Notes: generated by a model from the letters alone, not told the origin. A DNA stretch of 64,000 bases from Octopus sinensis (GCF_006345805.1 NC_043004.1:83514001-83578000); one strand, 5' to 3'; shown: positions 8,636 through 17,276, counted from the first letter of the stretch. Translations and numbers: made by a program.

Positions 8636-9658
8636 TGAATCATGCAATTTTATTCCTTTTCTAAGCAAATATATATACAACCCTGCCAACAGCCATGTTG
8701 AAATCGTCAAGTAAGCACTATCTATATGATACAAGTACCCTCCAATGCAACCATATAAAAAATAACCGGTAGTTGTTAAGAATGAAAGTACAAAATATGT
8801 AATATAATTCTGAAATAATTCATTCGTCAAATCCAGTAGAGTACAGAGTTCTTGAAATTGGTCGAAAATTCTCATAATTTCTTTACCTGTGTTCCCATCA
8901 TGTATGCTTTTGTTTTCAATATTATTTATTATTCTACTGTTTAACACCTTGAACTCAGTTATTAAAGTGTTTATAACGAAGTTGTGAATTGATAATAATG
9001 GGAAAATAGGTATAAATTTTATGGTGCTTATTAGATAATGAAGTATTAAGCTAATATTGCCGAAAACACTGGTTCGTGGGAAAGGATATATGAAGAGTTC
9101 CATAAATGTATTACTATCCTTGGTGCAAATCGGTAAAAGATATTCAGCAATAAAAATGCTTAGAAATATAAGAAAGGTATAAATATATTTGTATAATTTC
9201 CGAACAAAGTTGTTTTGAAGTGAAAAATTCGGGTTATATTTAATACATTGAAAATTGGTTATCTTATTCAGAATTGCAACATTTTTATCAGCATGGAAAG
9301 CAGTTCCAAACCATAGTGATGTTGCAGCAATTTGGCTAAAACCGATATCAATTTTAACGTTGAACACAGTTTCGACCTCCTTAGAATTCGAATGAATGTA
9401 TAAGAAACATCTAGCATTTTCTGCAAGCATACATATTTCAAGAATGCGAAAAGTGATGTATAAACCTTTTCTCTTTAGACTATATGATTTCCAAAGATAT
9501 GCTGAAAGTTTTATATTTATAAACTGGTGAATCCTTATAAAACATTGAATAAAATAGTGTGCGTTGTTGGGACGATGCACTTCTCTCTGGTAATTGACCC
9601 TCGGAGAATATGTAGATGGCTGTATATCGTTGTTGTTTAAAGGATATATTGTGAACAT
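8636..9658 (-). CDS. Gustatory-receptor-like (7tm_7/7TMIC) gene A, large coding exon (N-terminus to TM6)
   Basis: 341 open codons from ATG 9658 (the ORF track's earlier start is a TTG). About six hydrophobic segments with GR-like motifs: post-TM2 VAILNKI, TM4 ...TLITEFKVLN, loop FQELCTLLDLTNELF. Ends ...HDS|GTAAGT (phase-0 donor). Clear paralog of 13627-14649. Confidence 0.8.
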
Positions 9659-12600
9659 TTTCTTCAAGTATATTTCTAATACGACTTAAATAAAATATAT
9701 ACTACTGCACGAATAATTTTGTTAAAAAATATTAAGTTCCGTTTCCAAGCTGGTGTTATAAATTATTTTGTAGATCAAGGTTAACGGTTGTTTTTTAGAT
9801 GATATTTCAACTGTTATACGCGCTTCATATATTCTGTAATCCTGGTTTTCATGTGTTCGGACAGTATCTTCAAAATAACAAAAATGACGTTGTAATGTAG
9901 GGAACACTTGGTATAGTGCAATAAATTCATCACTTTATATGTTCATCTTTCTTAAAACAAACTACATGAAAACAAAGATCATTCATAATAACATCAATGA
10001 CCTGCTATAAAGTAATGTTTTAAAAGTTATGCTATTTAGCTTCAGTACAGAAGAGTAAGAGATTATTGGATCTTACTTAAGTGTAGTAAATAATCAATTG
10101 ATTCGCCTTTCTACGTAAATAGCTTCATTTTAGGTAAGTCAATATTCTTTACGTTTAAGTGTTGTAAATATATAACGATGAAAATAGAAAAATGGTTCGC
10201 TTTATTTTGTAGAAATATCAATAAAACATCAATGAGTCTCATACAGGATTCATATTGAAATTTATGTACAAATGCGATTGGAAGTTGAATACCTCACTAC
10301 AATCACACACACACACGCACACACACACAAACACAAACACACACACACACACACTCTCACACATACATATGTACATATAATTTATGTGTATTTCTTCACA
10401 ATCATCTGACCCACTTATTTTCCTTCATTTAAATATATATATATATATATATATATATATATATATGTATAAGTGTATATACATATATACACACATATAT
10501 ACATATATATGCATGCAAACATATATACATATATATATATATATATATAATATATATATATATATATATATATATAACACACACACGCGCGCATGTATGT
10601 ATGTATATTTGTATCTATAAATGATGACTCCATCTCTCTCGGTACTTCATTACATTCAATATAATTCAGCCTTATTGACAAAAGCTTTAATATTATCTGT
10701 GTAGCTTCCTTACATTAATAACCGTTGTCCAGTAAGGAAATATATCGATGTATATTGTTTACTATTAAAGTTATATCAGTAAAAATTCAGATACTAGCGA
10801 AATGTGTCTTAAACTTCAAAAAGGCTTGCATGTATGTGAGTCAAACGTAAAAATAAATCCGTTTTCGTTAAGGGTAAATTTATGCAATTTTTTCTTTAAA
10901 TATGTACAAAATCTATAATAATTGTTAGTATCAGCAATAATTAAATTTCCAGTCCATCATCGAAAAAGTGCCGTAAAACATGATGCCACTTTCCTTTGAT
11001 GACGGCTGTGTCCAGGTAACACATTTGAAACATCAAATTGTTGATGTTCATTGTTGCTTAATGAAATATCAACTGATGATGACTGCCGTTAAGGGATATA
11101 GAGTTTTCAAAGTGGAGCTTCTTACATCAAATACTAAACATGCCGATTCTTGTAAAAATTCTTTCTTGGGGCTTCTTTAGCATGCTTTGTCTTATGGACA
11201 CCAGTCATTATTTGTTACATCTTATTATGGAGCCGTGTAATTTAATAGTTATAATTTCGTTTCCAAAATTTAACACTGATGAAAATTGGTGCCTGATATT
11301 CATTGCCATCTATCTTCTTACAGCAAAGCATCCATGTTTGGTTTTCAGCTTTGCATTTACGCTTCTTAACATAGATTTTCAATTCTACCAGCTATCTGCT
11401 GTTGTCCTGCAGTGTGACAAACCTTGTAGAAGCATGATTGCTCAACATCTTAGAAATAACAAACAAAGCACCATGAAAACGCGCTGTACTCCCTTTAGAA
11501 ACTAACGAAGTGGCTTATAGACAGAATACTTTTCTCCATAGAATGGTGATTTGCAACAATAATATGCAGGCCAGTCTGAACGAGAAATACATATTACAGT
11601 ACAATAGTTGCTAATTACATCGCTGTTATATTTACTTTGTATTACACACATCGGAATAAACCCTGCAGTTTTTTTTTATCTCTTTCATCGTTTAATTATT
11701 TCACTCTTTCGGGAAATTAAACGACGTTAAGGTTTCGTTTAAATTTATGCAGCTCAAGGCATGCGAGAAACACATGAGCAGAGAGGAAATTCCATGAAGT
11801 TGATATTCTAGAAGAGAGTGACCGGTTTAGTAGTTAGCAAAGAGCCGAATGTCTAAGGGAATGAATGTGACAAAAAGTAAAGAGACGGATGAGTCGTGGG
11901 AATCAAAGAAGGGAGGATATGAAATTAGCTGTCTACAAGAAAGAGAGGTCATTATACTAACGGGAGAGAAAAATACAGAGGGAAGCTATCACTATATAAG
12001 TTTGGAGTCGTGAGTCTGCAGCCTGGAGTATATTTTGGGAGAGATTTGATATAATTCAGACAATCACACATTTTCTGAACGAAAACCATGGTAACTGTAT
12101 TTGCTGCAAAATTCCGGATGTAGGAACAGAAATTACTCTATCGTGACGTTTCACTTGGGATTTGTGCACTAGAGTTTCTGCACCTCTAGCTTGTTGCTAT
12201 AATTTCTGAACCTTCTCATCAGGGCTTGTTTCTGGAGTCCACTCCTAATTATGTTAAAGATAGATCTGCTTTCGGCAGAATATTACCCTCGGTGATAACG
12301 AGATTCCACATTGAGAGCAACTGTGTAGGTCTTAGCTAAGTACTGTTCATGTTCAGGCGAGGAGATGATATTTTATTTAAAAAAAAATCGCTTGATTTTT
12401 ATTGACAAGAGGCAAGAATAGCTTCTCACTCCTAAGATGGATCGATAAATCTCCGTTCCAGGAATCAGCCAAGATTTAGTACTCGGTTGCATGGGAGTGG
12501 TGCACAACAGGGAACTTAGAGAGGAGTGATGAGTCATCTCAAATGCATTGGCGTTAGTATAGATAGATATAGCATCAAATATCGATGTATAAATGGAACT

Positions 12601-13626
12601 GCGTATATATATATATATATATACATATATATATATATACATATATATATATATATGTATACATACATATACATATGTACATATATACATATATATATAT
12701 ATAATATATATATATATATATATATATATATATATATATATATATATATATATTATATATATATATATATATATATACATATATATATATATATATATAT
12801 ATATAAGATACATTTAAAGAAATAATTTTATTCTCAAATGCCTTATAATGCTAATAATATAACGTGAACAGGATAAACTATCCATATTTTGCAGAAAAAC
12901 CTGTTGACAGCCCACCATGATATTCGAACTTGCATCCCAGTGATTAGGCGTATATATGTATGTATCTATGTACATTTGCCTGAATTTTCAGTGATATAGC
13001 CATTCTTAATTGCATAATATTTCTATATAAATTTCCAGATGAATCCCTCACTGCTGTTTTATTGATACTTGAACAAAATGAAAACAAATCCTCTTGTGTT
13101 ATAATCTCACCTAGTGCACAACACTTAAGTATATAGAAAACAGATCATCCACGTCCATAAGAAGCTTACTTACAAAGAACGAATACATTGAGCTTATTTA
13201 CAAAGAACGAATAAATTGAGAATTTACTTAAGTAATATTTTCAGCAATTTTTCCTCGCCTTTTAAGTGACAGAAGCTTTACGATATAACTTTAAATGCAT
13301 TATTTTATTGAAAACACTTGACAATGATACGAATGGCCTTTGCATCTATATATTTTAATGAAAGGAGAACATTATAAATATAATGAAATCATTAAACGGT
13401 ATTACTTACTGCCTGTCTTACAACGTCATTCGTTTTATGACATAGATGCATGTTTTAAATTCATATAAGATATCAAGTGAGCATTAGATTTGAAGTAATA
13501 GCTAAATAAATGACTTATCAACAAAATATTTGAACTCATAACACAGGAAAGGGAAAGTTATAATTCTTAACAAAAGTATACATATTTGCACTACACGGTT
13601 TGTTGTCAGAAATATAGCTGAACAAA

Positions 13627-16569: not shown

Positions 16570-17110
16570 ATAGGCTACAGTCGACCTCGGCGGAATTTGA
16601 ACTCAGAACGTAAAAACAAACGAAATACCGCTAAGCATTTCGACCACTGTGCTAACGTTTCTGCTAGCTCGCTGCCTTTGTCATAACAAATATTATTTTC
16701 TACTCTAGGCACAGCACAAGGCCCGAAATTTTGTAGGAGGAGCCAGTCGATTAGATCGACCCCAGTACGCAACTGGTACTTAATTTGTCGAGATCGAAAG
16801 GATAAAAGGCAAAGTCGACTTCGGCGGAATTGTTACTCAGAACAAAATTACATTTGAAATATCTATTTCTTTACTACCCAGAAGGGGCTAAACACAGAGA
16901 GGGCAAACAATGATAGACAAACGGATTAAGTCGATTGTATCGACCCAGTGTGTAACTGGTATGTATTTAATCGACCCCGAAAAGATGAAAGGCAAAGTCG
17001 ACCGCGGCAGAATTTAAAGGCAGAACGTAGCGGCAGACGAAATACCGCTAAGCATTTCGCCGGGCGTGCTAACATTTTTGCCAGTTCACAGCCTTTGTCA
17101 TACGAATTAT
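16570..17110 (-). mobile_element. Two tandem copies of a tRNA-like SINE
   Basis: Repeated AAATACCGCTAAGCATTTCG and AAAGGCAAAGTCGAC blocks. Opposite-strand copies at 28010-28440 and 29445-29520. Confidence 0.7.
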
Positions 17111-17207
17111 TGCTATCGTTGTATCGTAGACTGCTAGATATACGTATGTTTAACGATAAAAATTGTGTGGTTATCTTTACCATAAGCATCGGTGGTTTAT
17201 CTTTCAG

Positions 17208-17276
17208 ATATATGAAGTGCGTGAAAATATATTCAATATTACAGATGACTTTAAAAAACCCGATTTTAATATGAAG
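17208..17276 (+). CDS. Probable second coding exon of GR-like gene B (IYEVRENIFNITDDFKKPDFNMK)
   Basis: Acceptor tttatctttcAG, 69 nt with no stop in phase 0, donor AAG|GTAAGC. A hydrophilic phase-0/phase-0 exon between TM6 and TM7 is the known GR gene layout. Confidence 0.65.

Follow-up and report, generated by a model that had tools for sequence, protein, structure and literature searches.

Two long open exons, one on each strand of a 64,000-nucleotide stretch of Octopus sinensis DNA (GCF_006345805.1 NC_043004.1:83514001-83578000; the window), are probably the first exons of two paralogous gustatory-receptor-like (GRL) genes that selection has kept. Their products, subunits of the seven-transmembrane ion channel (7TMIC) type, would form tetrameric ligand-gated cation channels. 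The minus-strand copy is referred to here as gene A and the plus-strand copy as gene B. Open reading frame (ORF) finding places the two frames at 8606..9667 (-) and 13627..14697 (+), and the exons defined within them (Table 1) are divergent, that is, head-to-head. Their proteins are 65% identical with zero gaps, and 223 of 1023 nucleotides differ (21.8%) with zero indels. Both exons end in KLH(D/H)S followed directly by GTAAGT, a phase-0 donor at the identical codon. An earlier reading of this DNA made without database searches (the sequence-only reading) had described paralogous 341-codon exons in opposed directions about 4 kb apart, each with six transmembrane (TM)-like segments and with an intron at a matching codon after TM6. 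Its coordinates and description are correct: the donor is present in A and B, the six segments appear as helices in the AlphaFold2 model of B, and hydropathy agrees. That the two frames are chance ORFs, or ORFs encoded by transposons, is scarcely credible. The window is indeed rich in transposon ORFs and microsatellites, but 341 open codons are expected by chance with a probability of about 8e-13 at the window's base composition, and Pfam shows no transposon domain. Also, tblastn finds A and B as the only copies in the whole window, which is not the behaviour of a repeat family, and homologues in other samples share the intron site.

The predicted fold groups the exon 1 protein with the insect chemoreceptor channels. 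AlphaFold2 with two sequences gave an unusable model (predicted local distance difference test, pLDDT, of 40), and a nine-sequence family alignment was used instead, which yielded a model of B exon 1 with a pLDDT of 67.4 and a predicted template modelling score (pTM) of 0.58. The model contains a short N-terminal helix followed by helices at residues 61-90, 96-121, 146-179, 198-248, 255-305 and 312-340. In the solved insect odorant receptor (OR) and gustatory receptor (GR) channels, very long TM4 and TM5 helices reach into the cytoplasm. The helices at 198-248 and 255-305, each of a length of about 51 residues and with a short turn between them, can be interpreted as TM4 and TM5 with cytoplasmic extensions of the same kind. 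The FQELC-x6-N-x2-F motif pointed out by the sequence-only reading is present in both A and B (B residues 268-282), but it does not sit in a loop before TM5, as had been supposed; in the model it lies within the long TM5 helix, in its cytoplasmic extension.

In a Foldseek search of the PDB, the ten best matches for the B model are all insect OR/GR subunits (probability 0.99-1.00; template modelling score, TM-score, 0.50-0.62). The best matches include MhOR5 (7lic, 7lid), ApOR5/Orco (8z9a), AaegOR10 (8v02, 8v00), AgamOR28 (8v3c, 8v3d) and BmGr9 (8vc2), so that the comparison with OR/GR structures proposed as a check of the GR-like assignment had a positive outcome. A TM-score between 0.5 and 1 means that two structures share a fold (PMC9998090). 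F-BAR, ABC exporters and TRP channels, the fold classes next in rank, score 0.12-0.26 with probabilities of at most 0.28, and no G-protein-coupled receptor (GPCR) or Cys-loop receptor occurs in the Foldseek top 50. The structural alignments to the OR/GR chains run at about 10-14% sequence identity. In addition, the positive-inside rule predicts an intracellular N-terminus (N-in topology), opposite to GPCRs, with 22 lysine and arginine residues inside versus 5 outside for B and 18 versus 3 for A.

The exons also belong to a small octopod family with members in other samples. An exhaustive HMMER search with a profile built from exon 1 of A and of B returned 8 proteins among 1.84 billion representative proteins, and word-index protein searches found nothing beyond this result. 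Seven of the eight make up one family (P0001-P0004 and P0006-P0008); the remaining match, P0005, an ENA protein with internal repeats and with sub-threshold Pfam matches only, was treated as spurious. Four members (P0003, P0004, P0006 and P0008) are exon-1-like ORFs of 342-355 amino acids on short Logan contigs, the contigs carrying family relatives being only 1-2 kb long. P0008 and P0001 come from Logan run SRR11869385, and P0003 from the sister runs SRR11869384, SRR11869391 and SRR11869394; if all these runs represent one species, that species has several GRL lineages. The relatives found agree with a cephalopod origin of the window.

Of particular interest is P0007, a spliced Octopus bimaculoides protein of 224 amino acids that UniProt names 'Gustatory receptor' (A0A0L8FL56). 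P0007 passes the Pfam 7tm_7 threshold (35 bits; cutoff 26.6), and its C-terminus, ...GISVGGFFVIKPSSVLTIFGSLFTYVIVVLQT, contains the GR TM7 motif TYxxxxxQ in the form TYVIVVLQT. The A/B profile finds P0007 by hmmsearch with E=7.2e-5 in the 1.8 billion-protein library. In hhalign comparisons, A/B match the P0007/P0008 group with 97.4% probability (E=1e-11) over 181 columns that end exactly at the KLH intron site, and the P0003/P0004 group with 98.8% probability (E=6.5e-17) over 299 columns. Divided in two, P0007 owes 32.3 of its 35 bits for 7tm_7 to the last 77 residues, and the TM4-TM6 part, which is homologous to exon 1 in the window, has no 7tm_7 match alone. The HMMER check against Pfam 7tm_7 and 7tm_6 that went with the GR-like assignment likewise gave no match for exon 1 of A or B, and Pfam as a whole gave zero matches, with or without exon 2. 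This miss is uninformative rather than negative, because the homologous part of P0007 is missed too.

The intron after TM6 is a further feature that the family shares. In the family alignment each unspliced ORF runs through the GT at the homologous phase-0 site, most of them reading '...VS', which is translated GTAAGT. The site is homologous in P0003, P0004, P0006 and P0008, and P0007 is spliced there and runs on into the TM6-TM7 loop and TM7; this conservation was judged within the octopod family. Family members also have weak secondary matches to Pfam 7tm_6, Trehalose_recp and DUF267 (P0004 scores 17.7 bits against 7tm_6, below the 25.8 cutoff; A and B have no 7tm_6 match), which have been grouped with insect chemoreceptors, apart from GPCRs (PMC3251606).

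Fold, profile-profile homology to the 7tm_7-positive P0007, the conserved phase-0 intron and N-in topology together uphold the assignment of A and B to the GR-like/7TMIC proteins. It is very improbable that they belong to a different multi-pass family (a GPCR-type chemoreceptor, a Cys-loop chemotactile receptor or a transporter) with a superficial GR likeness. Exon 1 has no Pfam match and no sequence match to a solved GR or OR, searches of the PDB sequences with exon 1 (phmmer and a profile search) returned nothing meaningful, and the family profile finds nothing better among the PDB sequences than a TM segment of an acetylcholine receptor (E=2.4). That match, however, is at chance level, folds other than OR/GR reach TM-scores of at most 0.26, and the predicted topology is opposite to that of GPCRs. 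The homologue P0007, moreover, carries a 7tm_7 TM7, and the weak secondary Pfam matches point to the insect-chemoreceptor group and not to GPCRs.

A local inverted duplication in an octopod-like genome would have given rise to A and B. The inverted arms (8792-9677 and 13608-14493) are 83% complementary and consist essentially of the coding exon alone, and a weaker match (74.5% over about 50 nt) crosses the donor into the intron. A shared bidirectional promoter was considered and set aside as being without sequence evidence, as the inverted copies cease to resemble each other about 19 nt before either ATG. The ratio of nonsynonymous to synonymous divergence (dN/dS) between the two exons is 0.66 overall and differs along their length: synonymous divergence (dS) is 0.38 in codons 1-166, 0.12 in codons 167-283 and 1.11 in codons 284-341, with dN/dS values of 0.75, 0.30 and 0.60, respectively. 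Identity between A and B reaches 91% in the central block, where the outgroup P0001 matches either of them at only 58-59%. Elsewhere in the exon P0001 is nearer to B in one segment (81% versus 56%) and nearer to A in another (61% versus 22%). This pattern is the mark of gene conversion between the inverted copies and not of extreme constraint. The converted block spans the end of TM3, the TM3-TM4 loop, TM4, the cytoplasmic helical extensions and the start of TM5.

The two reading frames bear the mark of selection. In a simulation with the observed number and spectrum of substitutions, a copy remains stop-free in about 1% of cases per lineage and in about 1e-4 for the total divergence. Because the neutral stop-free expectation is this low, we conclude that selection has kept both exons open.

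The TM6-TM7 loop and TM7, which lines the pore, are to be expected on downstream exons, of which one has been found, for gene B. The segment at 17208-17276 is probably exon 2 of gene B, encoding the cytoplasmic TM6-TM7 loop, to judge from its sequence: IYEVRENIFNITDDFKKPDFNMK can be aligned to IHDIVEDLYAMNFKGLSTETRMK, the first 23 residues of P0007 beyond the intron site, a further P0007 intron after '...RMK' being assumed. The segment is phase 0 at both ends and ranks first of 38 among the open segments downstream of B that consist of 69 nt between AG and GT, with a score of +18 (runner-up -5). It also ranks first of 105 such segments on both window strands and first of 1,510 in a relaxed test. 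The end coordinate of the sequence-only reading, 17276, coincides with the donor of this exon and is correct in that sense, although a second exon exists for the plus-strand gene only.

Gene B intron 1 also contains repeats. Three copies of a short interspersed repeat cluster directly upstream of exon 2; the copies of this repeat, at 16579-16683, 16756-16831, 16940-17100, 28285-28374, 29471-29522 and 60505-60596, are 78-84% identical. A 108-amino-acid ORF at 16948-17274 was rejected as a gene, as it reads through one of the copies. A 75-nt inverted repeat (15957-16031 and 16066-16140) is 96% complementary with a 34-nt spacer. The whole, 15957-16140, is a hairpin-forming palindrome and possibly a small element of the kind of miniature inverted-repeat transposable elements.

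Several observations weigh against the reading of A and B as genes kept by selection. The TM7 exon was not found in the 47 kb downstream of B or in the 8.6 kb downstream of A, using a motif regular expression, pairwise alignment to the P0007 C-terminus, a hydrophobic terminal-exon filter and a Pfam scan. No TYhhhhhQF motif was found downstream of A or B by regular expression, pairwise alignment or Pfam scan, and the Pfam scan of 136 filtered stop-to-stop segments revealed no TM7 exon. As a positive control, the last 54 residues of P0007 embedded in a similar pseudo-protein were recovered as 7tm_7 (19.3 bits, E=7.5e-4); a TM7 exon that is much more diverged, or split, could evade the scan. For exon 2 of gene A, nothing comparable occurs in the 8.6 kb downstream (best score -14), a region interrupted at 5260-5359 by an assembly gap of 100 bp, filled with N, in or near which an exon could hide. 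In addition, the 7tm_7 evidence for A and B is transitive through P0007, with exon 1 alone lacking a Pfam match, and the Foldseek E-values are modest (best 2.8e-3) for a model built from 9 sequences only. The dN/dS values of 0.6-0.75 in the flanks of the converted block could reflect relaxed constraint.

The closest relative of gene A in another sample also belongs on this side. It lies at about 616-1768 of L005, a 1915-bp Logan contig from SRR11869385 of which P0001 and P0002 are two fragments, and it is collinear with gene A along 1,342 nt, of which about 196 nt precede the ATG, with 76% of the nucleotides identical. One frame is kept throughout, with three in-frame stops and the start ATG lost, and L005 is therefore a pseudogene. 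The family as a whole shows duplication, conversion and loss, as is typical of chemoreceptor families.

The seven-TM gene of the sequence-only reading is thus borne out for TM1-TM6, which exon 1 encodes, and not for the seventh TM exon, which was not located in the window for A or B. The absent 3' exons may lie beyond the window, be unrecognisable or be lost. Five TM7 candidates were inspected and rejected: 7177-7142 (-), VTTIFGILALYV, is without an acceptor and has an early stop; 27248-27295 (+), TYSILLLEL, is without a phase-0 acceptor and has acidic residues inside the would-be helix; 17297 (+), SFSMCLFQF, is in the wrong frame, with an ORF of 25 codons; 37030-37134 (+) is a motif-free, T-rich stretch adjoining reverse-transcriptase ORFs of the long interspersed nuclear element (LINE) type; and 63899 (+) is polar.

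A and/or B could on these grounds be truncated relics, consisting of exon 1 only or cut off by transposons, and either recently inactivated or becoming pseudogenes. We think this unlikely. It would account for the missing TM7 exons and the missing exon 2 of A, and it is in keeping with a duplicated segment that is essentially exon 1 only, with the crowding of PIF1/Helitron, mariner and LINE remnants downstream of B exon 2, with the pseudogene L005 as closest relative and with the raised dN/dS of the flanks. Against it, both 341-codon frames, their ATG codons and their GTAAGT donors are intact after 21.8% divergence, without indels, where neutrality predicts about 1e-4. Gene conversion might help to preserve an open core, but it would not do so for the flanks, which have diverged, and gene B keeps a well-formed exon 2. 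Only 8.6 kb are available downstream of A, with an assembly gap among them, and octopus introns are often many kilobases long.

We therefore continue to favour two GRL subunit genes kept by selection. Each first exon would encode a cytoplasmic N-terminus and TM1-TM6, including the long TM4 and TM5 helices, and would be followed by the conserved phase-0 intron. The insect GRs and ORs of solved structure suggest, by analogy, that the products would form tetramers and act as ligand-gated cation channels. Any role in sensing is likewise inferred, as is the presence of TM7 exons that are intact.

Intact GRL channels might also serve a role other than external chemoreception, for example in development; this is possible, though we lean against it. 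The one non-arthropod GRL with a tested role in the literature covered is cnidarian and functions in the patterning of the body during development (Saina et al. 2015, cited in PMC5850775). The family also looks small, with about five lineages among 1.8 billion representative proteins, unlike expanded chemoreceptor repertoires. However, its size is probably underestimated, eukaryotic genomes being sparse in the searched libraries, and local duplication, helix divergence outside the core, birth-and-death turnover and raised dN/dS typify environmentally tuned receptors. At the other end stands a more specific proposal: that the pair are functional subunits of a second ionotropic chemoreceptor system in octopus beside the nicotinic-derived chemotactile receptors (CRs), with a conversion-homogenised core and diverged helices that allow co-assembly of subunits with different ligand specificities. 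We hold this to be distinctly unlikely as it stands. The co-expression and heteromer formation that the head-to-head layout would suit, according to the sequence-only reading, are conjecture. The pattern of the converted block is compatible with the idea of heteromers, and gene conversion between inverted repeats explains it equally well.

The features of the gene pair are collected in Table 1.

Table 1. Features of genes A and B, in positions of the window
Feature	Position	Strand	Description
Gene A splice donor GTAAGT	8630..8635	-	Phase 0; codon position same in B and all family ORFs
Gene A exon 1	8636..9658	-	341 codons, conserved ATG to phase-0 donor; cytoplasmic N-terminus and TM1-TM6
Gene-conversion block, gene A	8810..9160	-	Codons 167-283; dS low relative to flanks
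Intergenic region between divergent start codons	9659..13626	.	3,968 bp, ATG to ATG; (CA)n and (AT)n microsatellites
Gene B exon 1	13627..14649	+	341 codons; N-terminus and TM1-TM6
Gene-conversion block, gene B	14125..14475	+	Codons 167-283
Gene B splice donor GTAAGT	14650..14655	+	Phase 0, read from sequence
Gene B probable exon 2	17208..17276	+	23 codons, IYEVRENIFNITDDFKKPDFNMK; acceptor tttcag before, donor GTAAGC after

The DNA around the genes is rich in mobile elements. A search for shared exons downstream of A and B (blastn and tblastx) found interspersed repeats only. They belong to two families, one represented at 568-854 and 26344-26631 and the other at 5793-6019, 25514-25742, 40082-40304, 42175-42327 and 60635-60858, whose copies are 71-90% identical and flank the gene pair on both sides. 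All similarity between the downstream regions of A and B is due to these two families. A further repeat pair, 17993-18772 (-) and 44975-45728 (-), is 91% identical and contains a 260-amino-acid ORF without a Pfam match. The second copy carries a Y-x-DD-like motif (AIYKDDALAL), which suggests that the repeat is part of the reverse transcriptase of an unclassified retroelement. At 19380-21643 (-) and 23474-24331 (-), broken helicase ORFs of the PIF1-like type (Pfam PIF1 and Pif1_2B_dom), typical of a Helitron-type element, sit in a GC-rich island (about 51% GC versus about 33% elsewhere), and an adjoining ORF matches STPR repeats. Other elements include a truncated Mos1/mariner-type transposase at 30144-30860 (-), with HTH_48 and a partial DDE domain, and LINE-type reverse transcriptase fragments at 33966-36395 (-), with RVT_1 and zf-RVT. 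The region 32000-38000 shows an extreme T-over-A skew on the plus strand (AT skew to -0.45), with long homopolymer-like codon runs.

Our literature search found no description of cephalopod GRLs. The molecular literature on cephalopod chemosensation that was covered centres on nicotinic-derived CRs, ionotropic receptors (IRs) and GPCRs; reviews treat CRs, and a study of ionotropic receptors (IR25) in cuttlefish is cited. The sequence-only reading had spoken of an overlooked chemoreceptor class, and cephalopod GRLs are indeed undescribed in the literature found; GRLs of molluscs, however, are documented (PMC7746228; PMC5850775). A and B are new, very diverged GRL members and not a new class, given that molluscs are known to have GRLs and that an O. 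bimaculoides fragment is already listed in UniProt as 'Gustatory receptor'. Octopods that keep selected, locally duplicating GR-like genes would nonetheless offer a candidate receptor class for cephalopods. Also, the sampled 7TMIC diversity is extended to a lineage whose TM1-TM6 part is missed by standard Pfam/BLAST annotation, a practical warning for counts of mollusc receptor repertoires.

Among known receptor systems, the octopus CRs are, like A and B, candidate ionotropic sensory receptors of cephalopods, and their repertoires are significantly expanded in octopuses (PMC11526382). CRs are, however, nicotinic-receptor-derived Cys-loop pentamers, whereas A and B would form 7TMIC tetramers, and the two have no structural or sequence similarity; ligands and sucker expression have been demonstrated for CRs, and A and B are known from sequence alone. 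Insect ORs and Orco (7tm_6; 7lic, 8v02, 8v3c, 8z9a) are the best structural matches of the B model, and they probably outrank GRs in the Foldseek search because the PDB holds more OR than GR structures. ORs evolved from GRs within insects (PMC11526382), and A and B fall outside the insect ORs, with no 7tm_6 match and a non-insect host. The resemblance to insect GRs (Pfam 7tm_7; BmGr9, PDB 8vc2) lies in a TM-score of 0.53 between the B model and BmGr9, N-in topology, long cytoplasmic TM4/TM5 helices, a phase-0 intron in the 3' part of the gene, and an octopod family member, P0007, that has a TYxxxxxQ TM7 and passes 7tm_7. A and B differ from insect GRs in that exon 1 is below every Pfam threshold, TM7 has not been located and the host is not an arthropod.

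The O. bimaculoides protein A0A0L8FL56 shares a family with A and B by hhalign, aligns over the 23 post-intron residues with B exon 2 and conserves the FQELC-type motif as H(A/E)E(M/L)CxLL...(T/D)(N/D). It is only about 20-27% identical to A/B and thus represents a separate subfamily; it is also a partial model without TM1-TM3, and it has the TM7 that was not found for A/B in the window. A further group for comparison is that of the non-arthropod GRLs of Mollusca, Annelida, Nematoda, Cnidaria and Placozoa (Robertson 2015; Saina 2015; Eyun 2017). GRLs have been reported across Protostomia, including Mollusca, as well as in Cnidaria and Placozoa (PMC7746228; PMC11526382). In particular, they have been reported in Aplysia, and the molluscs in that GRL survey were Aplysia, Lottia and Crassostrea, that is, gastropods and bivalves and no cephalopod (PMC5850775). 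Octopod A/B-type sequences differ from these GRLs in that they escape word-based searches and, without TM7, Pfam. The likenesses are a GR homologue, a conserved 3' intron and the 7TMIC fold. A and B should be filed under the non-arthropod GRLs, and the known picture of GRLs as widespread in protostomes stays unchanged.

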